DNA of 64,000 bases, from positions 19,282,001 to 19,346,000 of the forward strand of contig NC_135251.1 in NCBI RefSeq assembly GCF_964204865.1, read 5' to 3'. Position numbers and translations under genes: made by a program. This document shows, piece by piece, positions 8,490 through 64,000 of the stretch; position 1 is the stretch's first letter, and every line of letters starts with the position of its first letter. The DNA is from Styela clava (lineage: Eukaryota). A model generated the notes under the pieces. It was not told where the DNA came from, did no database searches, and saw only the letters and a list, made by a program, of their open reading frames with translations.

Positions 8490-9095
8490 ATGTTTAAGAT
8501 ATCTACTGGAACTGTAAACTATCAGTACGTTGATGATGCTGAAAGGAGTTTGGAAGTTGATCGAGCTTGAAAATGTATGAACTTCCATCCTCACCCCAAG
8601 GCTATTCGTAAGTATTATCGCAAGAAAATATACCAGCGTGATTATTAAGATAAATTTATTCAGGGTAAATGATGCCGGTAAGCTAAATTACGCTAAAGAT
8701 AATCAGAGGAGAAGGGAAGTCGCAATCCTGAGAAATACTGGGAGTACGTGACGTAAGGGGACTGACCCTAACAATGAAAGGTAACACACCATAAGTTTCG
8801 ATTTGGAATCCCCTCGGCGGTAGCCTATCCCTATCTGATCACAGAACTTGTTTTTTCTAATGGTGATATATATATCGTAAATAATTAAGGTGCGCTGCAA
8901 TAAAGTAATGAGAATTGAATAGGGCGAAGTCAATGTTCAGAAATAGCTTAAAGATTTGACATATTCGCCTTCGCGACGCAACTGCGAGTAACCGTAAATT
9001 CAGTTACAATAAGCATAACATCATCCAAAAATTGAATATTTCACGCAACAGAAAATTATTATCATCGGAAAAGTCGGCTATTGTGAGGGGCTAAT

Positions 9096-41672: not shown

Positions 41673-41840
41673 TATAGTCCGGCAGGTAAGGGGACCTTTT
41701 TGGCCCAAGTTTGATTTCAGACATAAAGTTTTTTTTATTTGTGATTATTCATCTTGGGGTCATTGCCAATCATTTCTACATGGGTGTGGAGTTTGCAGCC
41801 TTGAGCAATTTTTTTTACGGCTCGATATTTGTATTTGTTT

Positions 41841-42509
41841 GTATTAGTGTTTTTCGTCAAACCTGTGCATCATAATGACGCACAACCTGAACCATAACCT
41901 GTTACAATACTATGTTCAGGTTGTGCGAAATCTTGGTGCACAAACTACGCGAGCACCAAATTTACTAGGAAATAAAATCCATAACTTTTAGGTATTTGTT
42001 GAGATATTGGTATTAGTGTTTTTCTTCAAACTTGTGCATCATAATGACGTACAACCTGAACCATAACCTGTTACAATACTTTGTTCAAGTTGTGCGCAAT
42101 CTTGGTGCACAAACTACGCGAGCACCAAATTTACTAGGAAATAAAATCCATAACTTTTAGGTATTTGTTGAGATATTGGTATTAGTGTTTTTCTTCAAAC
42201 TTGTGCATCATAATGACGTACAACCTGAACCATAACCTGTTACAATACTTTGTTCAAGTTGTGCGCAATCTTTGTGCACAAACTACGCGAGCACCAAATT
42301 TACTAGGAAATAAAATCCATAACTTTTAGGTATTTGTTGAGATATTGGTATTAGTGTTTTTCTTCAAACTTGTGCATCATAATGACGTACAACCTGAACC
42401 CTAACCTGTTACAATACTTTGTTCAAGTTGTGCGCAATCTTGGTGCACAAACTACGAAAGCACCAAATTTACTAGGCAATAAAATCAGTAACTTTTATGT
42501 ATTTGTTGA
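41841..42509. repeat. Tandem satellite, 169-bp unit, ~4 near-identical copies
   Basis: GTATTAGTGTTTTTC recurs at 41841, 42010, 42179 and 42348. Confidence 0.95.
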
Positions 42510-45207
42510 ACCCAGCTTTGGGTCGCGACCCATATAGAGAAAAATACTGTTGAAACGTACGCGTAAAATAAAGAGTACTATTTCAAAATACCCTCTATTG
42601 TTGCAATTAACAATACGAGCCTGCTAATGCAGTCGCTAGTGGTTCAAGTGGATATACATCCGGTGGAGAACAGTCAATTATTTGTTAGCGAGAATTGTTA
42701 TGCAGCGGGATGATCACGACGACGCATTGAAAGATGATAATATCACGAGAACAAGAATGAGAAAATTGCTACATTTTATAGTATTTCCCTGGGAAAGAAT
42801 GTAGTTCATTCTTATGTTCCATGCCAACTCTCGACACTTTTGCTTCTTCTCTTCTATAAAAATACATTGTTATTATATATTCGCATTTCCATCAGTTTGT
42901 TTGTGCTCCCAGATAACCGATCAGCGGCCTCCAAGGAGGACGGGGTCCCCTTTTAAGAAACCCTGTCATAAACTAAAAGAGGCGACCGTGCTTCTCTTGC
43001 CTGTTGTCATACTGTCCCTGGAATTCAGTTACAACAAAAAATTCACGAAAACGGTTTTTTAAATTTTATGATTTCATTAATATTCTCAACAATGAATGAT
43101 ATACGGGTGGTAAAATGCCAAGTTATTCCAACAACATGATCATGTTTTGCAATTTACAACCAATATTATGTATGTAACCTTGTTTGACAGAGCCCCAAGA
43201 GCTCTAACTACAAATATCAAAAATGTGAGGCCAAAAAGTCACACTACAACATTGTCAAATGTGCTGTATTCACGATAGATAACAGGTTTACCAAAAAGAA
43301 TTACATGAAAAAAGGTAAAATAAAGATCAATTCAGCAATATCTACTTGGTGATATGCATCTGTTGATGCTTTTATGTGTTTGTTTCGGAAGTTTAATAAC
43401 AGAATTAATTGTGGTTGTTGGGAATGTTTTAAAAAAAGGTTGCATTGAAAAAAGTTTCACAAAATGTCAAGGTTTGATAGTAGTAGAGAAGTGGAAAAAA
43501 TACTCCCATGTTTTTTTCGTTTGATAACCACGCCACAGAACTTCTCCGATAAGTATTGCGAGCAATTGCTAGAGGCAGAAATGCCAAGATGGGATTTCAA
43601 CGCATTGCAAACCAATATTAGCAATTCTTATATATATTCACGCATTCCCATCTGAACAGCGTGAAAAAGATTATACCTATCTACACACTTTAAGAACTAT
43701 GTCAGATGAGCGTCATATTATCGAATATCAGTATAGGAGTACTGCAATGGGAAAAGACATATAAGACGGAACTTTCAGTAGTATGCAATCAAATAATTAT
43801 ATTGTCGAATATATATTTAAAAACATTTCGTCACGCCAACTGCAGTCCAAAACTTTTTGTCTCTGGCTGAGCTTAGATACCGATTGGCACTCATGTAAAC
43901 TGGTAAGACTGTAAGAGGCACGCGATGGAGCAGATAGTAGAAGTATCCATCCCCCAGCCGTCATTTGAGTGGGTACTGCTGTTTTTATTGCAGATGTTAC
44001 TGATCTTTTCGTATTAAAGATTTACTGGCATCACCGATTTAAGGATGTTGAAAACCAACACGCAATATTACAAAACTTACTTTCAACACGCGGTTTGAAT
44101 AAATGAAAAAGCTGAAACTAGTATTCTTTAGAACGGCATACAATTCTATGGAATGAAATCATACAGAAAAGCCTGTCAGAGACCTATAGCTCAATAATCA
44201 AGTGGAATTTGATGCATGTGCGCAAGCGCGTTGCTACGTACAACCGAAGCACGCAGGAAAATGTGTGTGATGTATTAGTATTCACAATGTTTGACTAAAC
44301 TATGTTGGCATAACAGGTGCACATCTCGGTTTCGCCTACGCATACCTTCTATATCCACAAGGATATATTGCTCCCAAGCGCTCCTGAAGTATTCGAACCA
44401 AGATGACGCACAACCTGAACATTGTATGTTTACCAGATCAGGGTTCAGGATGTACGTCATTTTGATACGAATACTTTAAATCCACCTAAAAAAATTGCTC
44501 AACAATATATACTGCACACCCACCTGGGTATCATTATATATGTCATCTACATTATATCTAAACAATAAAAAAACTTTATGTCCCAAAACAATGTTAAGAC
44601 CCGATTCTGCCGGACTAATAATGATATCAAAACGATTAATTTCTAAATTTCGTGTCCAACGGCATAGTAACAAAACGTTAGATGATAGATGGACCGTTTC
44701 GTGTCCAATAACAAAAGTCTTTATGCCAGCTTTTTCGAAACTTTTTGTTCATGCGCCGCCAAATTATCAGTGAAATACACGAAAAAACGCTGCTCCTAAA
44801 TAAATCTCAATTTTGGGATCGTTAATGTGTACTTCATTCCTTTAAAAGTTTGTAAAGATGTAGGCCTAAGAATTAAAGGCAAAAGGTCAACTCTTCTCCC
44901 TTATCTCTGCCTAATTTTCCTTCGAAATGCCTAAACAATCACTCATGTTCGCCATACTCGGTTCAGCAAGTAAAAAAAGGGCAGCTCACAAAATTGTAGC
45001 AAGTATTGTCTACTATGTTACGTAACAATAGATACGGACACTGCTTAACAGAACGTAAACGCCATAGAAAGACAAAACGAATTTATTGATTCATATTCAC
45101 AACATTTAAGATAAGAAACAATAAAACATTTACAATAAATACCATATGTAAAATATTCATTCATATTTTAGCTAAGTTTAACACAAATTGGTCTTTGGTC
45201 CGCTGCT

Positions 45208-46362
45208 TTATGCGGTTTCCTCACACCGCGAACCAACGTGTTTGTTTGTTTCCGTCACAAAGCCCCCTGTCTGCGGCAGAGGAGTTAACTTGTTAGGGGT
45301 GTCAGTAACCTTGTTTTGTTTCCTCAGGGAGAAAGCTGTCAATATTTGCCATCTATCTTTGAATGTCATGAATATGCAAATGACATCGACAAAAAGCATA
45401 ATATCTAATGTTGCCGCGCGGATTGAAAAAGGAAAGTGTTTTGGAATTAAGAAGGAATTAATCACAATAAATATGATGTCCGTGAAAACAGCAACACATG
45501 TCCAAGTCAGTAAACGCCGAATAGCCTTTTGTATTTTACCAGGCTTCGAAGTTCCTGTATTGCATAAAAGCGTGATCCATTTAGAGCCTTGGTTTCTTGA
45601 TTTGTAATCCATGGCATCCTTCACGACTGGGTAAACGAACAAGCCAAGAAGGCCGAATTGAGCTAAGACCCCCGGAAGGTACATGATAGGAAACAAGTGT
45701 ATCATTTTGCTTTCAATTACCACACATCCTTGTGATATCGGCTCTTGACGATCAAATATAATAAATATATTTATAAGTAGAATCAAATGCGTAGAAAGCG
45801 TCGCAAATATTCCCCAACTCAAAAAATTGATGAATTTTCCTGTAGTCAGGCTTTGATTATAAACTATTTTTTGTCTCACCCATAAGAAGCAATAAACAAG
45901 ATATATTATAATCAAGTAATAAAACTTTGCCACAGTACCTACTACATTACATAGAAATAAAGAGTTTGCACCTCGAGGTGCCCAGATGTATACTTGCGTT
46001 ATCATGAATTTTTGAATGAGTAATACTGGAACTATCGTATAAATAGTGTGCAAAAGTCTTCCATTGAAAAAGCTTGTCGTTTGCCTGCTTTTCCATTTCC
46101 CATTCTGGATACAGTAGAAAACAAAACTCGCTAACAGCCAGCAGCATAGTAAACAGAGAATTGCTTCAACTGCTTGTGATAACGCCAGTAATACATTGAT
46201 CAAGTAATCGTTCGAATCTCCATCGCTAATGTTGAATGTTTGATTTGATGCCGCTGTCGAATTATCTTCCATAAACGTTTTGTTTGTTGCGGATTCGCTG
46301 GAATTCCAACTGCCATTGTTCAGCATCTGATTTGTAGCGACCGTTTTGTTTCCAAAATTCAT
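45208..46362 (-). CDS. Orphan intronless 7TM receptor-like protein, copy A (384 aa)
   Basis: Seven N-glycosylation sequons in the N-terminus, seven hydrophobic segments, Cys at the top of TM3 (FLCN) and in ECL2 (QGCV), YCFLWVRQ at the end of TM3, LGLFVYP in TM5. Confidence 0.85.
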   Translation of the reverse strand: MNFGNKTVATNQMLNNGSWNSSESATNKTFMEDNSTAASNQTFNISDGDSNDYLINVLLALSQAVEAILCLLCCWLLASFVFYCIQNGKWKSRQTTSFFNGRLLHTIYTIVPVLLIQKFMITQVYIWAPRGANSLFLCNVVGTVAKFYYLIIIYLVYCFLWVRQKIVYNQSLTTGKFINFLSWGIFATLSTHLILLINIFIIFDRQEPISQGCVVIESKMIHLFPIMYLPGVLAQFGLLGLFVYPVVKDAMDYKSRNQGSKWITLLCNTGTSKPGKIQKAIRRLLTWTCVAVFTDIIFIVINSFLIPKHFPFSIRAATLDIMLFVDVICIFMTFKDRWQILTAFSLRKQNKVTDTPNKLTPLPQTGGFVTETNKHVGSRCEETA

Positions 46363-46801
46363 TCTATTTTACTTTCGTATCAAACGAGGAAAGAAACCGG
46401 ATTCAAACACATAGTATCATATAAAATTTGCTACTAGCAATTCAGTCTTGTACAAGTACTGACAGTGACAGAAAATACCAGGCAAGGCAATATATATTAT
46501 GAAACACATGCGTTAATTAATAATACATTCGTAAAATCTTATTTCAATAAGTAATTTGTTAGCGTCATAGCGCGGAATAGATACCTTAAGTATGTTGATT
46601 TTGTTCTTAAAATCCCAAAGATCTTTTCAATCTTTTATTGATGATTGTTTCTCACATGTGTTATGGATTACTTTTTAACATTTTTTGTAATGCAATTTTG
46701 CGGCATTTGCAGTAAGACATAAATTCATACGCCTTTTTCAACACCGTGTTGCTCTATTCTTCAATTATTTACTGAAAACCGGATTTTTCCTGGCTTCCTA
46801 T

Positions 46802-47480
46802 CAGTGGCGTAGCATCCACCCCCGCAACCCCCGCGGTCGCGGGGGTCCCACAGCGAAAAGGGGCCCCAAGCGGTTAAAATTTAGAAATTTAACCGCAAAA
46901 CCAAAAGCTGCATTGCAAAACCAGTAATGCACATCTTATAAAGTTGATGTTAGTTCTGCTCAAATCGTTTTGTTACGTAACAATGCCGGAGTCGTCGATT
47001 TTCGGCGTCGTGTGGTTTGATCGCACCGGCCACCGGCACAATTACGAAGGCTGTCATGATGTCGAAAGCAAAACCTCTTAGTGGCGCACAAAAACGAAGA
47101 ATAAAGGGCAGAAGAGGAAGGACGTATGAAAAAAAATTAAAGCAACCAAGATAAACGAAATATTTAAACCAAAATTGAAACAATTAGACTTGGGAATACC
47201 GAACGTAACTGAGGAGGAATTAAGTCTAGCGTATCGGTAGAAAACCAGATGCGTGTTCAATCTCCAAAAGTGATGGAGCCGGCGCAAATGAATTTCCTTC
47301 CAAAACTTACACGACAATGATCACAGGTAAGCTACTGATTTTTAAAGCAAATTGAAAAAATTGATATGACGAAGATGGTGGCTGAGTTTGCTAACACGAA
47401 AGCGCAAATTTTAGGTTCCCATAGCCTTTTTATAGCGAAATGTTATGTTTTTTGACGAAATAAAAAAAAACTTTGTTTTA
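46802..47480 (+). mobile_element. Internally deleted hAT-like element (ZMYM1-like transposase remnants)
   Basis: Terminus CAGTGGCGTAGC with a GC-rich hairpin. MSKAKPLSGAQKRR (~47060) and IEKIDMTKMVAEFANTKA (~47350) resemble the extreme N- and C-termini of such transposases, from memory only. Confidence 0.45.
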
Positions 47481-47484
47481 GCCT

Positions 47485-48064
<580 letters not shown>

Positions 48065-48809
48065 TTTTTTTCAACAAGAAATTTATCACATTCACTAATG
48101 GATCCTGAAAAGCAAAAATAATTGCGATATTGTGTCAAAACAGCTGTTAAACAAAGAACACATATTACGCCGCACTGCAAAAGTGTTGATTACCGATGGT
48201 TATTCGTGTTGCGCAATCTGTGACGTCCGTCCCGCTTCATTTTAGCCGCACCTCGTACTATTGAATGAAGGTTCCCGATCGGGTGCCGGGAACCGCAGAA
48301 CAGTTGAAGAGGAACCACAATGCTAGGCGCAAAACTGATTTGACTTTTCCCTTCATAAGAAAACTCTCCGTTCTTCCCAGTTGATAAGGTTATTTCACAG
48401 GGTATTTTCGTCTTGTCGAGCATGAAATGTTTGAACATAATGAGAATAAGAATTTATCAATCAGAATACCGCTGAAATGATAAACAGGGAGCCATGAGTG
48501 CTAAACGCTGTCGGAAGGGGACCACTTGATATAAAAGGTTGGGAACCACTGGTCTAAAGGTACAGTACATTCCCATATCACAAAATTTTCTGCGACACCT
48601 GTGGGCTCGTTAATGCCATAATTATTTAACCGTTTCCATCACGTAATCTGTTTGAGCTGAAATATATTGGGTTTTAAGTAGGAATTCTTAAACGAAACCT
48701 CGGCGGCTAAATGTCAATGCTATCAAGCAATATTGCTAGTTACTTATCGATCTTAAGATCGGTAAGTATGTTAATAGGTATTTGTCTGTTTGTTTGTTTG
48801 TCTGTTAGT

Positions 48810-49978
48810 CAGGGGTGTCAAACATGCGGCCCGCGGGCCGCATGCGGCCCCAGAGAACTCCCAATGCGGCCCTCAAACGCTTAACAATATTTGTAATATT
48901 TTTTAAGCTTTATTTTCATCTAATTGATTATTCACACAAAAAAAGGACAATTTACAGAAAGTAGTTTTGAAAAATTAATTTTTTTATTTGTTTTTAATTT
49001 GATCCAATTATTGATACACTTCAAGCTAGCAAAAAAATAATAATTGAAATAAAAAGCACTTAAGGAACTAAATGTAACGCAAAGTACACGAAGAAAGTGG
49101 CATTTTCGAAAAAAAGATGGTTGCAATATTTCTGTATTTTTAAAAATTCTAAATCACATTGTTTAATTTGACACATTTCTATCAGCACCATGAAAGAATA
49201 TAAGTAAACAATATCAGAATAAGCTCAGCAGTAAATATGACAAATTTGAAGATTAACTTCGAATAGAATATTTTTATGCGTTTGTATATTATTATAATTA
49301 TACAACTACCTAGTTACTAAAAATCAATATATATAAATCATAACCAAAGCGGTCATATGCCAATGGTAGACAATGTGTCTGGCTAGGTATGGTCCGAAAA
49401 GTCAGTCATTACTTTTGTTAACTGATCTATACATGAAATGATGAATGTAATATTTTGCATTACTGAAACTAATCAAACATTCTCAACGATCCAGTATGAC
49501 CGATGATCATGTGACCTCGTTAATAAGAGTTGGTACTGTAAAATCATTTCAGCCCGATATTTGTAAGCTGGTGGCACAAAAGAGATGCCAAACGTCAGGA
49601 CATATGCAATAAAAAAAACATTTGTTAGTATTTTAGGAGTATATATTTAGTTTAGATTTGGTCATTTTTATTATGTATTATTCTTTTATCAAATCTTTGT
49701 TCAAAAATGTTTTGGATAATTGTAAAAAAATAAATTTGCAATAGTAGTGAAATACCAAGAAATTAATATGTGAATGCCATTTGAAATTTCAGAAAATAAC
49801 GAAACTTTATTCGGCTCTTTAATTGCATCACAATATATGTCTTGTTACAAACTACACACGTCTAAAAATATGCTATTAAGTATACATTATCAAAATATAT
49901 CAAAATCTGTTTGCGGCCCTTTGCATAATTCCCAAAATGCAATGCGGCCTTTGAAAACCCACGAGTTTGACACCCCTG
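48810..49978. mobile_element. hAT (Buster-like) non-autonomous element, present only in duplication copy 1
   Basis: TIR CAGGGGTGTCAAAC ... GTTTGACACCCCTG, GCGGCC subterminal repeats, near-TSD TGTTAGT/TGTTAGAT; empty site at ~57187. Confidence 0.9.
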
Positions 49979-50721
49979 TGTTAGATGAACGCAATATCTC
50001 ACGAAAGAGAAGAATCGAAATCGCAGTTTCGATTGATAAGTCTTCGGTCTCCGACTGAGATTCTCGTTAGCATATTAGGAGGTTTTTAGTCTAAATAAAT
50101 AATTAGTAATCCATAACACATATGAGAAACAATCATCAATAATAGATTGAAATCATCTTCGCAATATTTAGGAACAAAATCACTATCCTTAAGGTTTCTA
50201 TTCTGCGACATTACACTAACAAATTATTGGAATAAGATTTCATGCATAATTAATTAGCGCAGTGGTTCCCAATCTTTTTTGGTCGCGGCCCACTATTGAG
50301 CTCTTTAAATATTCGCGGCACACCTATCACAAAACATGAACATCATTATTAATACATTCGTAAAATCTTATTTTAATACGTAATTTGTTAGCGTCATAAC
50401 GCGGAATAGACACCTTGAAAATGTTGATTTTGTGTTTAAATATTCGAAGATTATTTCAATGTAATATTGATGATTGTTTCTCACATGTTCTACGATTACT
50501 TATTATTTATTTAGAATGAAATCTCGTAATGTGCTAACGAGCAGTATTGCTCAATAGCATTGCCATTTAGCCGCCGAGATTTCGTTTACGAATTCTTTCT
50601 TAAAACCCAATATATTTCAGCTTAAACAGATTACGTGATCGAAACGGTTAAATAATTATGGCACGAGCTCACAGGTGTCGTAGTAAATTTTGTGATATGG
50701 GAATGTAATGTAACTCTAGAC

Positions 50722-51035
50722 CAGTGGCTTCCAATCTATTAGGGCTCGTGGCCCCCTTCCGGGGTGTTTTAGCCCTCATGGCCTTCCTGTTTATCATTCC
50801 AGTGGTATTTATAGTGTTATTTTGATTGCTTGATTCTTAACCTCATTATGTTCAAACAATTCATTCACAAATACATGGAAACATCATGTCAAATATCGTT
50901 ATCAAAAAATGGAACTAGGAAGAACTTTTCTTGTAACGGGAAAAGTAAAATCGGTTTTGCGCTTAGCATTGTGACCCCCGTCCAACTGCTCAGTTGCCCT
51001 CATGGAATTCTGCGATCCCCGGTTGGAAACCGCTG
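50722..51035. mobile_element. Old hAT MITE carried in the duplicated upstream module
   Basis: CAGTGGCTTCCAA ... TTGGAAACCGCTG, flanks CTCTAGAC/ACCTAGAC. Paralogous copies at ~52382-52690, ~57938-58255 and ~59614-59927, and inverted at ~48270-48551. Confidence 0.7.
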
Positions 51036-51788
51036 ACCTAGACCTTCATTCATCACCAATGGTGTTCGTGTCTGTGATATATATTTATATGAATTGAACG
51101 CAGTCAGGGGAGTTGAGGGCCGAAGCTCCCATCCTTCTGAAATGCAAATCTATATCGTACATGCAAATCTAAATCGTACATAGATGCTAGATCTTTTTAG
51201 ATCCCCGAGACCCTTGAAAATCCGGACCCGCTAGCTGACACGGTCTAACTTGGCAATTACAATTTTCAGAATCCCTCCTACCCGCTGAAATTTTCTGGCT
51301 ACGCCCTTTGTATGAATACCACCTGCACAGTATCTTCTTCAACAGCCATTTCACCGATGTTGTCATTTGTTCTGAGAAAAAATGGTATTCGCGAAGGTAC
51401 TATTTTCGGTTTGTCTTGACTATAATTAATTCCAATTATCAATATAAAAACCGGTTTGTTTTAGCTAAAAAATTCACTTAATATTTGTTAAGCTAACTCC
51501 TAATATATATAATAATATAGTAGTTGATTAAGAAAAGTACTGGAGCGGTCATAATGGCTAATTTTATTCTTCATTTCGAGGGCGTGATGACACAAATTTT
51601 TTTGTATAATGACGCAATTCTCCGCTGACTCGTGCTTTTTGCCCCGAACAAATCCAGATATAAGTAGCCACTGATATTCAACAATATCTTAAAGAATCGC
51701 ACTGTAGGCGTACTTCACTGTCGCAGTTATCCAAGGAATATAAAGATCTCATTCTCATCCATCTCGTTTGGTTCATTTGGTGAAAGGA

Positions 51789-51875
51789 TTATTGATAGCA
51801 AGTCGGGAAACTGGGATTCCGACTGCCATTGTTCAGCACCTGATTTATAGCAACTGTTTTGTTTCCGAAATTCAT
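51789..51875 (-). pseudogene. 5' stub of the orphan 7TM family
   Basis: Encodes MNFGNKTVAINQVLNNGSRNPSFPTCYQ*. The first ~21 codons and the upstream region are homologous to copies A-C. Confidence 0.8.
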
Positions 51876-53787
51876 TTACTTTGAAAAACATTAAAAATGC
51901 TAAATTCAAACATAGGGTACCATGCAAAACTAGAATTTTAATATTCTGGAAGGATTGATATTGCTAGAGAATGAACGGCAATGCAATACAGATATTATGA
52001 AACACATGCACTAATACTAACTATTAATGCATTCGTAAAATCTTATTTCAATACGTAATTTGTTAGCGTCACAGCGCAGAATAGATACCTTAAGGATAGT
52101 GATTTTGTTCTCAAATATTCGAAGATTTTTTCAATCTATCATCGATGATTGTTTCTCTTGTGTCCTACGATAACTAATTATTTATTTAGAATAAAACCTC
52201 GTAATGTGCTAACTAAAGCTATTGCTTAATAGCATTACCATTTGCGAATTCCTTCTTGAAACCCAATATATTTCAGCTCAAACAAATTAGGCGATGGCAA
52301 TGGTTAAATGATTATGGCATTAACGAGCACACAGGTGTCGTAAAAACTTTTGTGATATGGGAATGTAATGTAATTCTATACCAGTGGTCCCCAACCTATT
52401 AGGGCCCGTGGCCACTTTCGGGGGGTTTTCGCACTCATGGCCTCCCTTACCATTCCAGTGGTATTTATAGAGTTACTTTGATTGCTTGATTCCTAACCTT
52501 ATTATGTTCAAACAATTCATTCACAAATACATGAAAACATCCTGTGAAATAATCTCATCAAGCAATGAAACTATGAAGAACTAGGAGTTTTCTTGTGAAG
52601 GGAAAAGTAATATCGGGTTTGCTTTGTGACCCCCGTCCAACTGCTCAGTTACCTTCTTGGAATTATGCGGTCCCTGGTTGTAAACCACTGACCTAGACCT
52701 TCATTGTGTATCATACATAACGATGATTAGTAGCTTGAAACGCTTTTTAGAACCTCAAGACTCTTGAGAACCCACGTTTTCCGGCCATCGGCTGGACCCA
52801 CTAGAATAGCTGATATGGTCTAACTTGACAATCAGAGAAGTTTTGGCCACCCCCCTATTTTTAAAATTCCCGGCCGAGTCGGAGGTGATGAATACAACCT
52901 GCACATTATCTTTGCCAACAGCTAAGGGAATTTTAACGATGTCATCTCTTGTTCTGAGAAGAAAAGATATTCGTGAAGGTACTATTTTCGGTTTGTTTAA
53001 CTATAATTATTTACAATATAAATATAAAAACTGGTTTGTTTAAGCTGAAAAATTTGACTAATATTTGTTAAGCTAATTCCTAATATAATAATATAGTAGT
53101 TGATTAAAAAAATTCCCTGGGCGATCATAATGGATAATTTTATTCTGAATTTCGAGGGCGTGATGACACAAATTTTTTGTATGATAACGCAATACTCCGC
53201 TCACTCGTGCTCTTTGCCCCGAACAAATCCAGATATAAGTAGCCACTGATATTTAACTTAAAGAAATCGCTCTATAGGCGTACTTCGCTGTCGAAGATAT
53301 CCAAGACAAGCGCGCATTTTAATCTATTTCGTTTGATTCATGTGGTGAAGGGACTATAGATAGGAAGCCAGGAAAAGTCCGGTTTTCAGTGAATCGTTGA
53401 ACAATATAGCAACATGGTGTTGGAAAAGGCGTCTGAATTTACGTCTTACTTCAAATGCCGCAAAATTGCATTACAAAAAATGTTAAAAAGTAATCCATAA
53501 CACATGTGAGAAACAATCATCAATAATAGATAGAAAAGATCTTTGGGACTTTATTAACAAGTCAACATATTTAAGGTTTCTATGGCGCTAACAAATTACC
53601 TATTGAAATAAGCTTTTACGAATGTATTATTAATTAGCGCATGTGTTTCATGATATATATCGCCTTGCCTGGTATTTTCTGGCACTGTCAGTACTTGTAC
53701 AAGACCGAATTGCTAGTAGCAAATTTTATATGATACTTTGTATTTGAATCCGGTTTCTTTCCTCGTTTGATAAGAAAGTAAAATAGA

Positions 53788-54921
53788 ATGAATTTTGGGA
53801 ACAAAACGGTCGCTACAAATCAGATGCTGAACAATGGCAGTTGGAATTCCAGCGAATCCGCAACAAACAAAACGTTTATGGAAGATAATTCGACAGCGGC
53901 ATCAAATCAAACATTCAACATTAGCGATGGAGATTCGAACGATTACTTGATCAATGTATTACTGGCGTTATCACAAGCAGTTGAAGCAATTCTCTGTTTA
54001 CTATGCTGCTGGCTGTTAGCGAGTTTTGTTTTTTACTGTATCCAGAATGGGAAATGGAAAAGCAGGCAAACGACAAGCTTTTTCAATGGAAGCCTTTTGC
54101 ACATTATTTATACGATGATTCCAGTATTCCTCATTCAAAAATTTATGATAACGCAAGTATACATCTGGGCACCTCGAGGTGCAAACTCTCCATTTCTATG
54201 TAATGTAGTAGATAATGTGGCAAAGAGTTATGACTTGATTATAATATATCTTGTTTATTGCTTCTTATGGGTGAGACAAAGGGTAATTTATGATCAAAGC
54301 CCGACCACAGGAAAATGTATCAATTTTTTGAGTTGGGGAATATTTGCGACGCTTTCTTCTCATTTGCTTCTACTTATGAATATTTTAATTATATTTGATA
54401 ATCAAGAGCCGATATCACAAGGATGTGTGATAGGTGAAAGCAAAATAATACACTTGTATCCTATCATGTTCTTTCCGTTTTTCTTAGCTCAGCTCAGCCT
54501 TCTTGGCTTGTTCGTCTATCCCGTTGTAAAGAATGCCATGGAATACAAATCAAAAAACCAAGGCTCAAAATGGATCATGATTTTATGCAATACAGGAACT
54601 TCGAAGCCTGGTGAAATACAAAAAACAATTCGGCGTATACTCACCTGGGCATGTGTTGCTGTTTTCACGGACATCATATTTCTTGTGGTAAATTCCCTCT
54701 TAATTCCAGAACACTTTCCTTCTTCAATTCGCGCGGCAACAGCAGATATGATGCTTTTTATCGATGTCGTTTGTATACTCATGACTTTCAAAGATAGATG
54801 GCAAATATTGAAGGGTTTCTTCCTGCGGAAACAAAACAAGTTAACTTCTCTACCACAGACAAGGCGCTTTGTGGCGGAAACAGACAAACACGTTGGTTCG
54901 TGGTGTGAGGAAGCGGCATAA
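53788..54921 (+). CDS. Orphan intronless 7TM receptor-like protein, copy B (377 aa)
   Basis: Paralog of copy A, with an in-frame 21-nt deletion in the C-tail. Confidence 0.85.
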   Translation: MNFGNKTVATNQMLNNGSWNSSESATNKTFMEDNSTAASNQTFNISDGDSNDYLINVLLALSQAVEAILCLLCCWLLASFVFYCIQNGKWKSRQTTSFFNGSLLHIIYTMIPVFLIQKFMITQVYIWAPRGANSPFLCNVVDNVAKSYDLIIIYLVYCFLWVRQRVIYDQSPTTGKCINFLSWGIFATLSSHLLLLMNILIIFDNQEPISQGCVIGESKIIHLYPIMFFPFFLAQLSLLGLFVYPVVKNAMEYKSKNQGSKWIMILCNTGTSKPGEIQKTIRRILTWACVAVFTDIIFLVVNSLLIPEHFPSSIRAATADMMLFIDVVCILMTFKDRWQILKGFFLRKQNKLTSLPQTRRFVAETDKHVGSWCEEAA

Positions 54922-55723
54922 TGCAGCGGATTGGTTTCGAACATTATCAGAATTATGTTAATCCTAGCTAAAATATGAATGAATATTTTACATATTGTAT
55001 TTATTATAAATTTTCATTGTTCTTATTTTAAATGTTGTGTATATGAATCAATAAATTCTTTTTGTCTTTCCATGTAGTTTACCTTCTGTTAAGTAGTTCC
55101 GCCTCTATTCTTACGTAACATAGAAAAGACTTTCTGCATTTTCGTCAGCAGCAGTTTATTTACCTGCTGAACCGAGTATGGCGAACATGAGTGTTTTTTA
55201 GGCATTTCAAAGGGAAATCAGGCAGAGATAAGGAAGAAGAGTTGACCTTCTGCATTTTATTTTCAGGCCTACATGTTCACAAACTTTTAAAGGCATGAAG
55301 TATAAATTAACGATCACAAAATTGAGTTTTATTCAAAAGCAGCGTTTTTTTCGTGTCAGGGCGCCGTGAGTTTTTTCCTTGATAATTTGGCGCCGCGTGA
55401 ACAAAAAGTTGCAAGGCTATTACATTTTTGTGTTCATATATTTGAGTATAGCTCTCTTGTTTCTGTAACCATAACCAATCAATATTAACTCAAAAAAGAC
55501 GTAACAATTATAATTTGTGTAGCCGCTTCTGTTGCTCAGACAAACATTCAAACATGACTATTAACATTGCCTCGTTTTCAAAGTTTTGCGTGTTATTTGT
55601 CAGTTTCAGTTGTGTTTCCGAAAAATATTTGTATATCAAATTACTTAATCGATATCATGTCTTCAGATTAGCTTTAGTTTATTTGAAATATTCAAAAATT
55701 AGTCTTGCTGCAATAGACTAGGC

Positions 55724-56155
55724 CAGGGGCGAAAATTTTCTATGTCTTAAAAACTTTGCAACTGCATTACTCTCCATGTTTTCATCCACATATGCTTGTG
55801 AATCTATGTTCTTTAATATGCACTATATCAAGTCTGTAGCCTGATAAATGAAACCGATAGTTCGTGTACTTCTCTGAAAATTACAAACCATCAACCCAAT
55901 GTAAAATCTCTATCAGCGGCAATGCAGCAGCAGTCTCACTAATATAGAATGAAAAAAGTAATCAAATCTATTTTTTGGACTGATATTTTCCCAAATAGTG
56001 AATCTGTCTGTACATGTTTAAAAGGTCAATTGTTGTGTATCATTGCTTTGAAATTAGCAAAGAATTATATTTAATTGTGGTCGGCACGCGGAAGAATTTT
56101 GTCGTTAAATTTAACCGATTTTAGCACGCGAGCCGGAAAAGGTTGCCCACCCCTG
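55724..56155. mobile_element. hAT MITE (duplicate at 62664-63083)
   Basis: CAGGGG ... CCCCTG termini with perfect TSD GACTAGGC in both duplication copies. Confidence 0.75.
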
Positions 56156-59013
56156 GACTAGGCTAAAATGAGCTATCAGTAAATTTGAGCAACACGTGGT
56201 TGTAACATCCGGATCTATTTTAGAAAGCCCCTGGCACTAATGCAAAAATGCAAGATTGAGGAAAACCCACCCTCGCCACTTTTCAAAATAAAAATATATA
56301 TTATTAAATATCCAGTTAGGGTTAGGGCGAAGAACGATTTGAATTTCTAACGAAATCTGCATTACTAACCCTAACTGTATCATTACTAATTATTTTGAGA
56401 GTTGGCGGTAATTATTTTTATGGCGGGGACTTTGTACAAAGGATACAAACATTTTAAATGAATGCTTCAAACATGTACACGACATTACAAAGGTCAACTC
56501 TCAAAACCAGCTAAAAAACTTGTTGCGATACTAAGGCACAAAGAGAAGTTTTATGGAACCAAGGGTCGGGAATCGTTTAAAGAACTTTAGTGTCTCCAAG
56601 TAAAGATATAAAGGCGAAGTGTTAATATTTTCTGACCTTTTAACAGGTGTTTATTTACATTAGAGTTTCATGTAAACTGGTAAGACTGTAAGAGGCACGC
56701 GATGGAGCAGATACTAGGAGTATCCATCCCCTAGCTGTCATTTGAGTGGGTACTGCTGTTTTTATTGCAGATGGTACTGATCTTTTCGTATTAAAGATTT
56801 ACTGGAAGCCGATTTAAGGATGTTGAAAACCAACACGCAATATTACAAAACTTACTTTCAACACGCGGTTTGAATGAATGAAAAAGCTGAAACTAGTATT
56901 CTTTAGAACAGAATACTGGTCTAATAATTCCACTGGTCTAAAGTTACAGTACATTCCCATATCACAAAATTTTCTGCGACACCTGTGGGCTCGTTAATGC
57001 CATAATTATTTAACCGTTTCGATCACGTAATGTGTTTGAGCTGAAATATACTGGGTTTTAAGTAGGAATTCTTAAACGAAATCTCGGCGGCTAAATGGTA
57101 ATGCTATTGAGCAATATTGCTAGTTACTTATCGATCTTAAGATCGGTAAGTATGTTAATAGGTATTTGTCTGTTTGTTTGTTTGTCTGTTCGATGAACGC
57201 GATATCTCACGGAGGAGAGGAATTGAAATCGCAGTTTCGATCGATAAGTCTTCGGTCTCCGACTGATATTCTCGTTAGCATATTAGGAGGTTTTTAGTCT
57301 AAATGAATAATTAGTAATCCATAACACATGTGAGAAACAATCATCAATAATAAATTAAAATGATCTTCGTAATATTTAGGAACAAAATCACTATCCTTAA
57401 GGTTTCTATTCTGCGACATTACGCTAACAAATTATTGAAATAAGATTTTACGAATGCATTATTAATTAGCGCAGTGGTTCCCAATCTTTTTTGGTCGCGG
57501 CCCGCTATTGAGCTCTTTAAATATTCGCGGCACACCTATCACAAAACATGAACATCATTATTAATACATTCGTAAAATCTTATTTTAATACGTAATTTGT
57601 TAGCGTCATAACGCGGAATAGACATCTTGAAATTGTTGATTTTGTGTTTAAATATTCGAAGATTATTTCAATGTAATATTGATGATTGTTTCTCACATGT
57701 CTTACGATTACTAATTATTTATTTAGAATAAAACCTCGTAATGTGCCAACGAGCAGTATTGCTTAATAGCATTGCCATTTAGCCGCCGAGATTTCGTTTA
57801 CGAATTCCTTCTTAAAACCCAATATATTTCAGCTCAAACAGATTACGTGATCGAAACGGTTAAATAATTATGGCATTAACGAGTTCACAGGTGTCGTAGT
57901 AAATTTTGTGATATGGGAATGTAATGTAACTCTAGACCAGGCTTCCAATCTATTAGGGCTCGTGGCCCACTTCCGGGGTATTTTAGCACTCATGGCCTTC
58001 CTGTTTATCATTCCAGTGGTATTTATAGTGTTATTTTGATTGCTTGATTCTTAACCTCATTATGTTCAAACAATTCATTCACAAATACATGAAAACATCA
58101 TGTGAAATATCGTTATCAAAATATGAAACTAGGAAGAACTTGGAGTTTTCTTGTAACGGGAAAAGTAAAATCGGTTTTGCGCTTAGCATTGTGACCCCCG
58201 TCCAACTGCTCAGTTGCCCTCATGGAATTCTGCGATCCCCGGTTGGAAACCGCTGACCTAGACCTTCATTCATCACCAATGGTGTTCGTGTCTGTGATAT
58301 ATATTTATATGAATTGAACGCAGTCAGGGGAGTTGAGGGCCGAAGCCCCCATCCTTCTGAAATGCAAATCTATATCGTACATGCAAATCTAAATCGTACA
58401 TAGATGCTAGATCTTTTTAGATCCCCGAGACCCTTGAAAATCCACGTTTTCCGGACCCGCTAGCTGACACGGTCTAACTTGGCAATTACAATTTTCAGAA
58501 TTCCTCCTACCAGCTGAAATTTTCTGGCTACGCCCTTTGTATGAATACCACCTGTTCAGTATCTTCTTCAACAGCCATTTTACCGATGTCGTCATTTGTT
58601 CTGAGAAAAAAGGGTATTCGCGAGGGTACTATTTTCGGTTTGTCTTGACTATAATTAATTCGCATTATCAATATAAAAACCGGTTTGTTTTAGCTAAAAA
58701 ATTCACTTAATATTTGTTAAGCTAATTCCTAATATAATAATATAGTAGTTGATTAAGAAAAGTACTGGGGCGGTCATAATGGCTAATTTTATTCTTCAAT
58801 TCGAGGGCGTGATGACACAAATTTTTTTGTATAATGACGCAATTCTCCGCTGACTCGTGCTTTTTGCCCCGAACAAATCCAGATATAAGTAGCCACTGAT
58901 ATTCAACAATATCTTAAAGAATCACTCTGTAGGCGTACTTCACTGTCGCAGTTATCCAAAGAATATAAAGATCTCATTTTCATCCATCTCGTTTGGTTCA
59001 TTTGGTGAAAGGA

Positions 59014-59100
59014 TTATTGATAGCAAGTCGGGAAACTGGGATTCCGACTGCCATTGTTCAGCACCTGATTTATAGCAACTGTTTTGTTTCCGAAATTCAT
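59014..59100 (-). pseudogene. 5' stub of the orphan 7TM family (duplicate)
   Basis: Same 28-codon stub as 51789-51875. Confidence 0.8.
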
Positions 59101-60706
59101 TTACTTTGAAAAACATTAAAAATCCTAATTTCAAACATAGGGTACCATGCAAAATTTGCTACTAGAATTTTAATATTCTGGAAGGATTGATATTGCTAGG
59201 GAATAAACGGCAATGCAATACAGATATTATGAAACACATGCACTAATACTAACTAATAATGCATTCGTAAAATCTTATTTCAATACGTAATTTGTTAGCG
59301 TCATAGCGCAGAATAGATACCTTAAGGATAGTGATTTTGTTCTCAAATATTCGAAGATGTTTTCAATCTATCATTGATGATTGTTTTTCCTGTGTTCTAC
59401 GATAACTAATTATTTAGTTAGAATAAAACCTCGTAATGTGCTAACGTGCAGTATTGCTTAATAGCATTACCATTTGCGAATTCCTTCTTGAAACCCAATA
59501 TATTTCAGCTCAAACAAATTAGGCGATGGCAATGGTTAAATGATTATGGCATTAACAAGCACACAGATGTCGTAGAAACTTTTGTGATATGGGAATGTAA
59601 TGTAATTCTATACCAGTGGTCCCCAACCTATTAGGGCCCGTGGCCACTTCCGGGGGGTTTTCGCTCATGGCCTCCCTTACCATTCCAGTGGTATTTATAG
59701 TGTTACTTTGATTGCTTGATTTCTAACCTTATTATGTTCAAACAATTCATTCACAAATACATGAAAACATCCTGTGAAATAATCTCATCAAGCAATGAAA
59801 CTAGAAAGAACTAGGAGTTTTCTTGTGAAGGGAAATGTAATATCGGGTTTGCGCCTAGCTTTGTGACCCCCGTCCAACTGCTCAGTTGCCTTCTTGGAAT
59901 TATGCGGTCCCTGGTTGTAAACCACTGACCTAGACCTCATTGTGTATCATACATAACGAAGATTAGTAGCTTGAAGCGCTTTTTAGAACCTCAAGACTCT
60001 TGAGAACCCACGTTTTCCGGCCATCGGCTGGACCCACTAGAATAGCTGATATGGTCTAACTTGACAATCAGAGAAGTTTTGAACGCAATATTTTTTGTAT
60101 GATGACGCAATACTCCGCTCACTCGTGCTTTTTGCCTCGAACAAATCCAGATATAAGTAGCCACTGATATTTAACTTAAAGAAATCGCTTTATAGGCGTA
60201 CTTCGCTGTCGAAGATATCCAAGACAAGCGCGCATTTTAATCTATTTCGTTTGATTCATGTGGTGAAGGGACTATAGATAGGAAGCCAGGAAAAGTCCGG
60301 TTTTCAGTGAATCGTTGAACAATATAGCAACATGGTGTTGGAAAAGGCGTATGAATTTACGTCTTACTGCAAATGCCGCAAAATTGCATTACAAAAAATG
60401 TTAAAAAGTAATCCATAACACATGTGAGAAACAATCATCAATAATAGATTGAAAAGATCTTTGGGACTTTATTAACAAAGTCAACTTATTTAAGGTTTCA
60501 ATGACGCGAACAAATTACCTATTGAAATAAGCTTTTACGAATGTATTATTAATTAGCGCATGTGTTTCATGATATATATCGCCTTGCCTGGTATTTTCTG
60601 GCACTGTCAGTACTTGTACAAGACCGAATTGCTAGTAGCCAATTTTATATGATACTTCGTATTTGAATCCGGTTTCTTTCCTCGTTTGATAGGAAAGTAA
60701 AATAGA

Positions 60707-61861
60707 ATGAATTTTGGGAACAAAACGGTCGCTACAAATCAGATGCTGAACAATGGCAGTTGGAATTCCAGCGAATCCGCAACAAACAAAACGTTTATGG
60801 AAGATAATTCGACAGCGGCATCAAATCAAACATTCAACATTAGCGATGGAGATTCGAACGATTACTTGATCAATGTATTACTGGCGTTATCACAAGCAGT
60901 TGAAGCAATTCTCTGTTTACTATGCTGCTGGCTGTTAGCGAGTTTTATTTTCTACTGTATCCAGAATGGGAAATGGAAAAGCAGGCAAACGACAAGCTTT
61001 TTCAATGGAAGTCTTTTGCACATTATTTATACGATGATTCCAGTATTCCTCATTCAAAAATTTATGATAACGCAAGTATACATCTGGGCACCTCGAGGTG
61101 CAAACTCTCCATTTCTATGTAATGTAGTAGATAATGTGGCAAAGAGTTATGACTTGATTATAATATATCTTGTTTATTGCTTCTTATGGGTGAGACAAAG
61201 GGTAATTTATGATCAAAGCCCGACCACAGGAAAATGTATCAATTTTTTGAGTTGGGGAATATTTGCGACGCTTTCTTCTCATTTGCTTCTACTTATGAAT
61301 ATTTTAATTATATTTGATAATCAAGAGCCGATATCACAAGGATGTGTGATAGGTGAAAGCAAAATGATACACTTGTATCCTATCATGTTCTTTCCGTTTT
61401 TCTTAGCTCAGCTCAGCCTTCTTGGCTTGTTCGTCTATCCCGTTGTAAAGAATGCCATGGAATACAAATCAAAAAACCAAGGTTCAAAATGGATCATGAT
61501 TTTATGCAATACAGGAACTTCGAAGCCTGGTGAAATACAAAAAACAATTCGGCGTATACTCACCTGGGCATGTGTTGCTGTTTTCACGGACATCATATTT
61601 CTTGTGGTAAATTCCCTCCTAATTCCAGAACACTTTCCTTCTTCAATTCGCGCATCAACAGCAGATACGATGCTTTTTGTCGATGTCATTTGTATACTCA
61701 TGACTTTCAAAGATAGATGGCAAATATTGAGAGGTTTCTTCCAGCGGAAACAAAACAATGTTACTGACGTCCCTACCAAGTTAACTTCTCTACCACAGAC
61801 AAGGCGCTTTGTGGCGGAAACAGACAAACACGTTGGTTCATGGTGTGAGGAAGCGGCATAA
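60707..61861 (+). CDS. Orphan intronless 7TM receptor-like protein, copy C (384 aa)
   Basis: Differs from copy B by ~8 substitutions plus the 7-aa indel. Confidence 0.85.
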   Translation: MNFGNKTVATNQMLNNGSWNSSESATNKTFMEDNSTAASNQTFNISDGDSNDYLINVLLALSQAVEAILCLLCCWLLASFIFYCIQNGKWKSRQTTSFFNGSLLHIIYTMIPVFLIQKFMITQVYIWAPRGANSPFLCNVVDNVAKSYDLIIIYLVYCFLWVRQRVIYDQSPTTGKCINFLSWGIFATLSSHLLLLMNILIIFDNQEPISQGCVIGESKMIHLYPIMFFPFFLAQLSLLGLFVYPVVKNAMEYKSKNQGSKWIMILCNTGTSKPGEIQKTIRRILTWACVAVFTDIIFLVVNSLLIPEHFPSSIRASTADTMLFVDVICILMTFKDRWQILRGFFQRKQNNVTDVPTKLTSLPQTRRFVAETDKHVGSWCEEAA

Positions 61862-62663
61862 AGCAGCGGATTGGTTTCGAAAATTATCAGAATTATGTTA
61901 ATCCTAGCTAAAACATGAATGAATATGTCACATATTGTATATATTATAAATTTTTATTGTTGTTATTTTAAATGTTGTGTATATGAATCAATAAATTCAT
62001 TTTGTCTTTCCATGTCGTTTACCTTCTGTTAAGTAGTACCGCCTCTATTCTTACGTTACATAGACAAGACTTGCTGCATTTTCGTGAGCTGCAGTTTATT
62101 AACCTGATGAACCGAATATGGCGAACATGAGTGTTTTTTAGGCATTCCAAAAGGAAATCAGGCAGAGATAAGAAAGAAAAGTTGACCTTCTGCATTTTAT
62201 TTTCAGGCCTACATGTTTACAAACTTTTAAAGGCATGATAATATACATTAATGATCACAAAAGTGAGTTTTATTCAAAAGCAGCGTTTTTTTCGTGTCAG
62301 GGCGCCGTGAGTTTTTTCCTTGATAATTTGGCGACGCATGAACAAAAAGTTGCAAGGGTATTACATTTTTGTGTTCATATAATTGAGTATAGCTCTCCTG
62401 TTCCTGTAACCATAACCAATCAATATCAACTCAAAAATGACGTACCAATTATAATTTGTGTAGCCGCTTCTGCTGCTCAGACAAACATGACTATTAACAT
62501 TGCCTCGTTTTCATAGTTTTGCGTGGTATTTGTCAGTTTCAGTTGTGTTTCCGAAAAATATTTGTATAGTAAATTACTTTCCTAAAAATCGTTATCATGT
62601 CTTCAGAATAGCTTTAGTTTATTTGAAATATTCAAAAATTAGTCTTGCTGCAAAAGACTAGGC

Positions 62664-63083
62664 CAGGGGCGAAAATTTTCTATGTCCTAAAAAATTTGCA
62701 ACTGCATTACACTCCATGTTTTCATCTACATATGCTTGTGAATCTATGTTCTCAGTTATGAACTATATCAAGTCTGTAGCCTGATAAATGAAACCGATAG
62801 TTCGTGTACTTCTCTGAAAATTACAAACCATCAACCCAATGTAAAATCTCTATCAGCGGCAATGCAGCAGCAGTCTCACTGATATAGAATGAAAAAAGTA
62901 ATCAAATCTATTCGTTGGACTGATATTTACCCAAATAGTGAATTTGTCTGTACATGTTTAAAAGGTCAATTGTTGTGTATCATTGCTTTGAATTATATTT
63001 AATTGTGGTCGGCACGCGGAAGAATTTTGTCGTTAAACTTAACCGATTTTAGCACGCGAGCCGGAAAAGGTTGCCCACCCCTG
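62664..63083. mobile_element. hAT MITE (duplicate of 55724-56155)
   Basis: Same termini and TSD GACTAGGC. Confidence 0.75.
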
Positions 63084-64000
63084 GACTAGGCTAAAATAAG
63101 CTATCAGTAAATTTGAGCAACACGTGGATGTAACATCCGGATCTATTTTACAAAACCCCTGGCACTAATGCAAAAATGCAAGATTTAGGAAAACCCACCC
63201 TCGCTACTTTTCAAAATAAAAATATTTTTAAATATCCAGTTAGGGTTAGGGCGAGGAACGATATGAATTTCTAACGAAATCTGCATTACTAACCCTAACT
63301 GGATAATTACTAATTATTTTGAGAGTTGGCGGGAATTATTTATATGGCGGGAACTTCGTACAAAAGGTACAAACATTTTAAATGAATACTAAAACATGTA
63401 CACGGCATTACAAACGTCAACTCTCAAAACCAGCTGAAAAACTTGTTGCGATACTAAGGCACAAAGAGAAGTTTTATGGGATCAAGGGTCGGGAATCGTT
63501 TAAAGAACTTTAGTGTCTCCATGTAAAGATATAAAGGCGAAGTGTTAATATTTTCTGACCTTGTAACAGGTGTTTATTTACATCAGAGCTTTATTTTCTT
63601 CAGTGTTTTTTTGTGTGTGAACCTGATGTTATACTATATTTTAAGCTTACATAATTAGTAAGATATTTCATTTAGCTTTTCTGATTTTTTTTTATTGGTC
63701 GAAAAGCAATCTTGACTGAGTAAATACATGTATAAGGTACTCTGTATTGGTAACGGATCCGTACCGGTACCTGTACAAGAGTAACCGGTAAGGTCATCGT
63801 TGCCGTTTACTGATAATGTTGAAAGCCAGCGTAAAAGACAGTAGATTCCGAACTCTAAAATTTCAAATTACATATTTGAACCTTGAGTGTCGCTGCTCGA
63901 TAACCAGCTTTGGTTGCCCGCGACTTCCCTTCCCCAGCCCAGTAAATTTGTTTAATTTTTCATTGTCTCGTAGTTTGTGTTCAATTTTTTTTTGGTTGGA

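Follow-up and report, generated by a model that had tools for sequence, protein, structure and literature searches.

Among living animals, tunicates are the closest kin of vertebrates. Both their larvae and their adults respond to chemicals, yet homologues of the chemoreceptor families of vertebrates, insects or nematodes have not been found in them. They have no OR, TAAR, V1R or V2R genes, to which 'alternatives' are expected (PMC7776563), and the candidates proposed so far are just two ordinary class A receptors, in aATEN neurons (PMC7776563). Homologues of insect or nematode chemoreceptors were not found in Ciona by Kamesh et al. (PMC2396169). Here we report on a window of 64,000 nucleotides from the ascidian Styela clava (assembly GCF_964204865.1, contig NC_135251.1, positions 19,282,001 to 19,346,000 of the forward strand), which holds an array of three single-exon genes, A, B and C, for seven-transmembrane (7TM) proteins with a predicted G-protein-coupled receptor (GPCR) fold. 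At least 100 genes of this fold, common to Styela, Ciona and Clavelina, would be concrete candidates for the sought chemoreceptors. In its broad form, the reading that we favor, with a probability of about 0.6, is that the family is a chemosensory-type GPCR repertoire, consisting of functional, so far ascidian-only 7TM receptors for ligand-diversified sensing.

The described systems closest in genomic behavior are the chemoreceptor repertoires, namely vertebrate OR, V1R and T2R genes, nematode serpentine receptors, and the class A expansions of echinoderms and lophotrochozoans. Like them, the family comprises at least 100 mostly intron-free tandem genes, with pseudogenes and stubs, gene conversion, a relaxed ratio of nonsynonymous to synonymous divergence (dN/dS), and an outer half that varies while the inner half is conserved. 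The likeness is in genomic behavior, however, as the family has no sequence relationship to any of them. Class A (7tm_1) receptors are closest in layout, sharing the seven-helix bundle, the extracellular N-terminus, the disulfide between helix 3 and a hairpin in the second extracellular loop (ECL2), an Arg 25 residues past the Cys, and helix 8; MCHR2, SSTR2 and rhodopsin are among the best Foldseek matches listed. Unlike class A, on the other hand, the family gives no significant sequence or profile match, has x-R-Q for D/E-R-Y and neither CWxP nor NPxxY, and carries a basic residue in the middle of helix 2, an Asp in the middle of helix 6 (D295), and Asn or Asp in helix 7.

AlphaFold2 was run on gene C with a 143-sequence alignment, and the resulting model (predicted local distance difference test score, pLDDT, of 81.9 and predicted TM-score, pTM, of 0.80) has seven long helices (residues 49-87, 101-132, 135-170, 176-203, 221-256, 276-304 and 312-332), a beta hairpin in ECL2 (206-215), and a short helix 8. 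A Ciona member (P0150), 22% identical, was modelled with the same architecture (pLDDT 84.1, pTM 0.83). When the PDB was searched with Foldseek, at least 500 matches were returned, and those listed (50) were all GPCRs at a probability of 1.00, comprising class A receptors as well as GABA-B, GPR156 and Frizzled/Smoothened. These listed matches are weak, with E-values of ~1e-3 and TM-scores of 0.22-0.59. With VIA-align, in which margins of ~1 Z unit count as ties, GPCRs of classes A, C, D and T align at Z 14-18 over 230-264 residues, the top scores being 17.1 for the Styela model and 18.0 for the Ciona model. As modelled, then, the proteins form a GPCR-type seven-helix bundle, and the structure searches single out no class. 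The idea of a 7TM receptor, originally drawn from the letters alone, is therefore kept.

Landmark residues agree with this fold. The seven hydrophobic segments of the original prediction correspond to the seven modelled helices, which follow a sequon-rich N-terminus and obey a positive-inside charge pattern, with 14 Lys and Arg in predicted inside loops versus 3 outside. Residues 1-48 contain 7 N-x-S/T sequons, so the density of sites claimed for the N-terminus holds, but heavy glycosylation itself does not follow, because sequons are potential sites only. In an alignment of 132 family members, to which the conservation figures below also refer, Cys138 is 100% and Cys213 98% conserved, and the model places the former atop helix 3 and the latter within the ECL2 hairpin, which fits the GPCR-like Cys pair that had been proposed.

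FLWVRQ is found in all of A, B and C, with Arg163 exactly 25 residues past Cys138. In class A receptors, C3.25 and R3.50 are likewise 25 residues apart, and this spacing is kept in 115 of the 117 members that have W-x-R/K-Q. FLWVRQ was thus correctly placed at the DRY position. W161, R163 and Q164 are 93-98% conserved. DRY, CWxP and NPxxY are absent from A, B and C in a motif search, again as predicted, and the sole D-R-W triplet lies in helix 8 (residues 336-338). Across the family, CWxP occurs in 1 and NPxxY in 4 of the 132 members, and W-x-R-Q replaces DRY with the Arg kept. Also conserved are Q235, L241, Y244-P245 where helix 5 ends on the inner side, R283, and F334 ahead of helix 8. A conserved basic residue lies in the middle of helix 2 (K118 here, R in 71% of the family), and D295 in the middle of helix 6 is 87% conserved. 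Position 326 in helix 7 is N in 78% of the family and in all other subfamily members, and D in A, B and C.

Two side observations concern the same proteins. D326, together with K118 and D295, alters the helix-core charge balance in the A/B/C trio. At the C-terminus, the paralogs at 21.5 Mb on C2 (L007, L008, L011 and L012, at 21.54-21.58 Mb) end in -C-E-E-T-V, resembling a class I PDZ ligand. The window genes instead have -E-E-T-A (A) or -E-E-A-A (B and C) in this place, and may have lost a PDZ-ligand-like tail.

Sequence searches for known relatives returned little. Pfam hmmscan assigned no family to A, B and C (no 7tm_1 match at E up to 10), to ten Styela paralogs or to ten remote homologues. 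When the 132 members were scanned singly, just two weakly touched 7tm_1 (best E 2.5e-4), and matches to other receptor families were absent. Conversely, PF00001 matches in this genome never coincide with family loci. A family profile searched against 177,635 PDB sequences found no GPCR even at E up to 10. With hhalign, two class A alignments built from 7tm_1 genes of the same genome gave a probability of 2-19%, which is a weak negative because these alignments are shallow (Neff ~3-4). In a protein atlas, 26 of the 30 nearest entries were unnamed chordate clusters, the best scoring 0.96 with 257 members, and among named clusters none scored 0.85 or above. Adding the TAS2R model discussed below, no clear match to a known family was obtained, in accordance with the orphan status first assigned to the genes.

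One Clavelina member is labelled in UniProt with the PROSITE 'family 1 profile'. If this label is considered along with the disulfide and Arg 3.50, the most economical origin would be as a highly divergent branch of class A. We found no description of the family in the literature searched. The family with this GPCR fold is real and apparently undescribed.

The substitution pattern indicates that A, B and C are real genes rather than chance open reading frames (ORFs), since frames stay open among paralogs at a synonymous divergence (dS) of ~0.6, with dN/dS within 0.3-0.8. In particular, dN/dS is 0.4-0.5 at dS ~0.6 and 0.3-0.8 in younger pairs, and recent duplicates have dS of 0.03-0.14. For the window genes, dN/dS is 0.6 for A against B or C, and 0.3 for B against C. 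Constraint is uneven along the protein. Using helix halves taken from the AlphaFold2 helices, hence approximate, conservation across the family is 1.86 bits in cytoplasmic halves versus 1.40 in outer halves (Mann-Whitney p=4e-6). In the subfamily, entropy is 0.93 in outer versus 0.64 in inner halves (p=5e-4), with ECL2 varying most of all regions.

The copy number is high genome-wide, and the genes are clustered, both as anticipated. A profile search of the genome gave 119 matches among 408 first-look candidates, which is a lower bound, and 108 of them have no stops. Nearly all matches are single open frames of 320-460 amino acids (aa), and they are found on most chromosomes, in many cases as tandem groups of two to four. 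Close paralogs number about a dozen (58-77% identity, most frames open and a few broken) and are located in clusters at C17:3.20-3.22 Mb and C2:21.53-21.58 Mb and as single copies on C3, C6 and C8. The 'YCFLWVRQ family' named at first is a real type, but it is just a subfamily, with ~13-15 members and so far Styela-only, of a larger family with Ciona and Clavelina. In a tree built by a quick method with a midpoint root, this subfamily is a Styela-only clade on a long, fully supported stem with Ciona and Clavelina outside, and within it the C17 trio branches as sister group to the window trio.

A search of 1.84 billion representative proteins found 227 clusters at E up to 1e-3. Thirty of these were sampled, of which 11 are named, and all 11 are an 'uncharacterized protein' of Styela clava, Ciona intestinalis or Clavelina lepadiformis. 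Judged from these named relatives, the family has so far been seen only in ascidians. One class A gene of this genome is 100% identical to a RefSeq Styela clava protein, and one family paralog (L023) is identical to another RefSeq protein (P0005). On the other hand, a 5.8-billion-cluster collection that includes RefSeq Styela clava contains no protein above 61% identity to A, B or C, so the trio is either unannotated in RefSeq or absent from its sequenced individual. Annotation covers just two members of the subfamily, LOC120336388 and LOC120342418. The subfamily, including A, B, C and the cluster at C17:3.20-3.22 Mb, is either mostly unannotated or variable in copy number between individuals.

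The locus itself records how such copies arise and disappear (Table 1). The original count of three single-exon paralogs and two stubs was right: the ORFs lie where they had been placed, and tblastn of the window yields exactly two fragments and no other family coding pieces besides A, B and C. Protein identity is 84% between A and B or C, and 96-98% between B and C. Compared with A and C, gene B has a 7-codon deletion in its C-terminal tail. In self-blastn, 49979-52845 aligns with 57187-60081, and 53166-56668 with 60083-63592, at ~95% identity, and dS between B and C is 0.03. As these alignments show, B with stub 1 and C with stub 2 were generated by a tandem duplication of ~7 kb. Gene A belongs to an inverted duplicate of 2.0 kb, 89% identical to both 53359-55356 and 60277-62297, and its dS from B or C is 0.13-0.14.

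The divergence of gene A is not uniform. Residues 1-101 are alike in A, B and C except for one conservative change in C, and nucleotide differences between A and B or C number 2 in codons 1-101 and 100 in codons 102-384. Because only 3 mismatches in 350 bp are found in a sharply bounded stretch, versus 7-31% divergence per 100-bp bin in the remainder of the unit, this stretch is identified as a gene-conversion tract. It spans the 5′ untranslated region, the sequon-rich N-terminus, helix 1 and the first intracellular loop (ICL1).

Transposon-borne or retroposed copies were considered and ruled out, because the duplicated units carry the upstream module described below and flanks, and no terminal repeats were seen. 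A degenerate family fragment (L016, C2:19348816-19349364) lies 2.8 kb past the window end, with 57% identity over residues 87-273 and three TAA stops. The array thereby extends past the window as a pseudogene. It is duplicating, homogenizing and losing copies simultaneously. The claim of birth-and-death clustering is borne out by stubs, pseudogenes and recent duplicates all being present. As for the 'expanding array' of the original prediction, the recent duplicates are real, but turnover describes the locus better than plain expansion, given the stubs, pseudogenes and conversion that accompany them.

An upstream module accompanies the genes. At A, B and C alike, it contains TAATCC, an E-box (CACATGTG) and TTAATTA in a ~160-bp block, followed by TATATAT at -134 and GTCAGT at -101. 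The window has nine copies of the ~160-bp block. Three are those of the genes (46501-46672, 53489-53649 and 60407-60568), two occur in each of 50105-50505 and 57313-57712, a remnant of which part survives adjoins stub 1 (51999-52157), and another copy adjoins stub 2 (59231-59396). The two inverted pairs have no coding sequence and look like footprints of lost genes. Module blocks are kept in 11 of 11 subfamily members, other chromosomes included. The module is evidently under constraint, since its sub-blocks are 78-93% identical even between paralogs whose coding dS is ~0.6. We infer that it acts as a promoter. Promoter, TATA and AATAAA positions are all predictions from sequence, and the simplest reading of them is a predicted intron-free transcription unit of ~1.4 kb per gene.

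The predicted fold, the outward sequon-rich N-terminus, the stapled ECL2, the contrast between inner and outer halves, at least 100 clustered intron-free genes, a turnover marked by pseudogenes, stubs and gene conversion, purifying selection that is relaxed, and the shared upstream module together are the signature of a ligand-diversified repertoire. In the proposed mechanism, the N-terminus would face outward and the Cys138-Cys213 disulfide would tie helix 3 to the ECL2 beta hairpin, so that the variable outer helix halves and ECL2 could form the ligand-recognition side. With their conserved cytoplasmic face, the receptors may engage one shared transducer, which would most probably be a heterotrimeric G protein. 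This face comprises F-L-W-x-R-Q-R with its Arg at 3.50, the Y-P pair where helix 5 ends on the inner side, R-R where helix 6 begins, and S/T-F ahead of helix 8. Each gene would be a compact unit of ~1.4 kb, intron-free, running from the conserved TATA-containing promoter module to AATAAA. Local duplication, conversion and loss of genes would keep the repertoire turning over, in the manner of environmental chemoreceptors. By analogy with that mode of turnover, a chemosensory or other ligand-diversified sensing role is most likely. G-protein coupling, ligands and the sensory role are what we infer from these features.

A narrower form of the reading is tentative, and we regard it as possible only. 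It holds that the family is the missing ascidian chemoreceptor repertoire, that is, a new tunicate-restricted GPCR class replacing OR, TAAR, V1R, V2R and T2R, which were lost or never had. Larval papilla and epidermal sensory neurons and adult siphon cells would then use the receptors for settlement and feeding cues. If this is true, the shared promoter module with TAATCC, E-box and TTAATTA provides a handle for receptor choice.

Several points weigh against a sensory GPCR repertoire. First, the canonical class A microswitches (D/E of DRY, CWxP and NPxxY) are missing. Second, structural matches are not class-specific, as microbial rhodopsins, the adiponectin receptor and TMEM87A score just 1-3 VIA Z units lower than GPCRs. 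Third, regional dN/dS above 1 (TM2, TM3 and ECL2, in young pairs) rests on 5-12 substitutions per region and is suggestive only; with whole-gene dN/dS below 1 and the values above 1 resting on few substitutions, strong positive selection is not claimed. Fourth, receptor families that are large, clustered and fast-evolving are found in immunity or endogenous peptide signalling as well, so that the pattern alone leaves function unfixed.

The fourth point leads to an alternative that we consider unlikely but worth weighing. Instead of environmental chemicals, receptors with this GPCR fold could bind endogenous ligands, for instance tunicate-specific peptides, hormones or lipids, or else let haemocytes sense immune or microbial cues. 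Both the fold and the conservation of the cytoplasmic face suit any GPCR signalling role, and the -E-T-V tail of the 21.5 Mb paralogs, being PDZ-ligand-like, is typical of scaffolded signalling receptors. There is also a precedent in Ciona, where lineage-specific neuropeptides have receptors in clades unrelated to known peptide receptors (PMC6475428). However, those receptors were drawn from ~160 GPCRs already predicted in Ciona, a set presumed to exclude this family because Pfam 7tm_1 fails to recognize it. Furthermore, a family of more than 100 genes, in rapid local turnover and accompanied by stubs and pseudogenes, far exceeds the needs of known endogenous ligand sets, and the variability is concentrated on the outer half and ECL2.

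It is improbable that the products are 7TM proteins not coupled to a transducer, such as channels, lipid-handling or trafficking proteins (TMEM87, adiponectin receptors) or rhodopsin-like proteins. In favor of this, the class A activation motifs are missing, and microbial rhodopsins, TMEM87A and adiponectin receptor 2 reach VIA Z 13-16, near the GPCRs. Against these stand the Foldseek matches listed, all of them GPCRs, and the receptor-type landmarks: sequons, helix 3-ECL2 disulfide, ECL2 hairpin, helix 8 and Arg 3.50. Among the 40 most conserved positions, neither a retinal-binding Lys nor a PAQR metal motif is conspicuous, and housekeeping 7TM proteins are not expected as more than 100 fast-turnover intron-free genes.

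Very improbable is a tunicate sister group of vertebrate TAS2R (class T) or of fungal Ste2-type (class D) receptors. TAS2Rs are, like the present genes, intron-free and in tandem clusters without DRY, CWxP or NPxxY, and with the Styela model the 7 leading VIA rows belong to TAS2R14 and TAS2R46 (Z 16.2-17.1, 250-264 residues aligned), only ~1 above class A, so that the nominal lead at Z ~17 is a tie. This lead failed to replicate with the Ciona model, where TAS2R14 ranks 46 at Z 13.8. Ste2 scores high with both models, being second for Styela (Z 16.7) and first for Ciona (Z 18.0, 2.3 above the next row), with ~258 residues aligned at 4.1-4.7 A and 8% sequence identity. The TAS2R (PF05296) and STE2 (PF02116) models of Pfam match no scanned member, and a whole-genome search with the former found nothing at family loci and one sub-threshold match at an unrelated place. 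Unlike TAS2Rs, the family has a long sequon-rich N-terminus, and unlike Ste2 it has another taxonomic range. To our knowledge, both TAS2R and Ste2 lack the helix 3-ECL2 disulfide, which is invariant in this family, and this was counted against kinship. TAS2R kinship was rejected on the unreplicated VIA lead and the Pfam model that matches nothing.

Allorecognition or self/non-self receptors for gamete self-sterility or colony fusion are hardly credible. The genes do fit in being clustered, duplicated and fast-evolving and in encoding surface proteins, but Styela clava is solitary, and the family is spread over most chromosomes rather than held in a single haplotype block. In the two paralogs for which RefSeq could be compared with this assembly, protein divergence is just 1.5% and 4% (383/389 and 372/387 identical), not the extreme polymorphism to be expected at recognition loci.

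A ligand-diversified receptor repertoire would matter in several respects. Its Ciona members are open to direct testing by CRISPR, with reporter constructs and in existing single-cell atlases. As a GPCR lineage, the family would be one that has kept the helix 3-ECL2 disulfide and Arg 3.50 and replaced every other class A microswitch, and such a lineage informs which parts of the activation machinery are dispensable. Styela clava is also an invasive fouling species, for which receptors of settlement cues would be of practical interest.

Table 1 Features of the receptor array, in window coordinates
Feature	Position	Strand	Basis
Gene A, YCFLWVRQ-subfamily 7TM receptor coding sequence, intact, single exon, 384 aa	45208..46362	-	ORF list
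Gene B, coding sequence, intact, single exon, 377 aa	53788..54921	+	ORF list
Gene C, coding sequence, intact, single exon, 384 aa; copy used for modelling	60707..61861	+	ORF list
Stub 1, codons 1-22 only, head-to-head with gene B	51810..51875	-	tblastn, 82% identity over 22 aa
Stub 2, counterpart of stub 1 within tandem unit 2, head-to-head with gene C	59035..59100	-	tblastn
Gene A upstream module (predicted core promoter)	46463..46672	-	motif positions, conserved blocks
Gene B upstream module (predicted promoter)	53489..53692	+	motif positions, conserved blocks
Gene C upstream module (predicted promoter)	60407..60611	+	motif positions, conserved blocks
Inverted pair of orphan modules without coding sequence	50105..50505 (50105-50268 + 50345-50505)		self-blastn, module search
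Inverted pair of orphan modules, second tandem unit	57313..57712 (57313-57480 + 57557-57712)		self-blastn, module search
AATAAA, predicted poly(A) signal, starts 121 nt past gene A stop codon	45082..45087	-	hexamer match
AATAAA, predicted poly(A) signal, starts 129 nt past gene B stop codon	55050..55055	+	hexamer match
AATAAA, predicted poly(A) signal, starts 129 nt past gene C stop codon	61990..61995	+	hexamer match
Tandem duplication unit 1 (orphan modules, stub 1, gene B)	49979..56668	+	self-blastn
Tandem duplication unit 2 (orphan modules, stub 2, gene C)	57187..63592	+	self-blastn
Inverted 2.0 kb duplicate (gene A, ~440 bp upstream, ~430 bp downstream)	44777..46802	-	self-blastn
Gene-conversion tract, A vs B/C, -46 to +304 relative to ATG	46058..46408	-	mismatch count

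Other features were noted in the window. Between gene A and the tandem units lies a remnant of a Mos1/mariner-type transposase (47537-47854; HTH_48, E 1.3e-7), with a partial inverted copy of its N-terminal peptide on the opposite strand (47790-48095; whole region 47537-48098). A conventional class A GPCR (35859-37376, plus strand; 7tm_1, E 1.2e-28) lies ~8 kb from gene A and is unrelated in sequence to the orphan family, and an ORF upstream of it (34786-35655, 289 aa) has no Pfam match. A tandem repeat at 41838-42509 consists of roughly four copies of a ~169 bp unit at 92-97% identity. An ORF of 701 aa on the minus strand (6489-8594) matches the RVT_1 reverse transcriptase (E 2e-32), presumably of a non-LTR retrotransposon. 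Finally, the minus-strand ORF at 201-674 has a sub-threshold match to His_Phos_2, in the C-terminal part of histidine phosphatase branch 2 (E 6e-5, 23.0 versus the 23.6-bit cut-off), and is probably one exon of a multi-exon gene.

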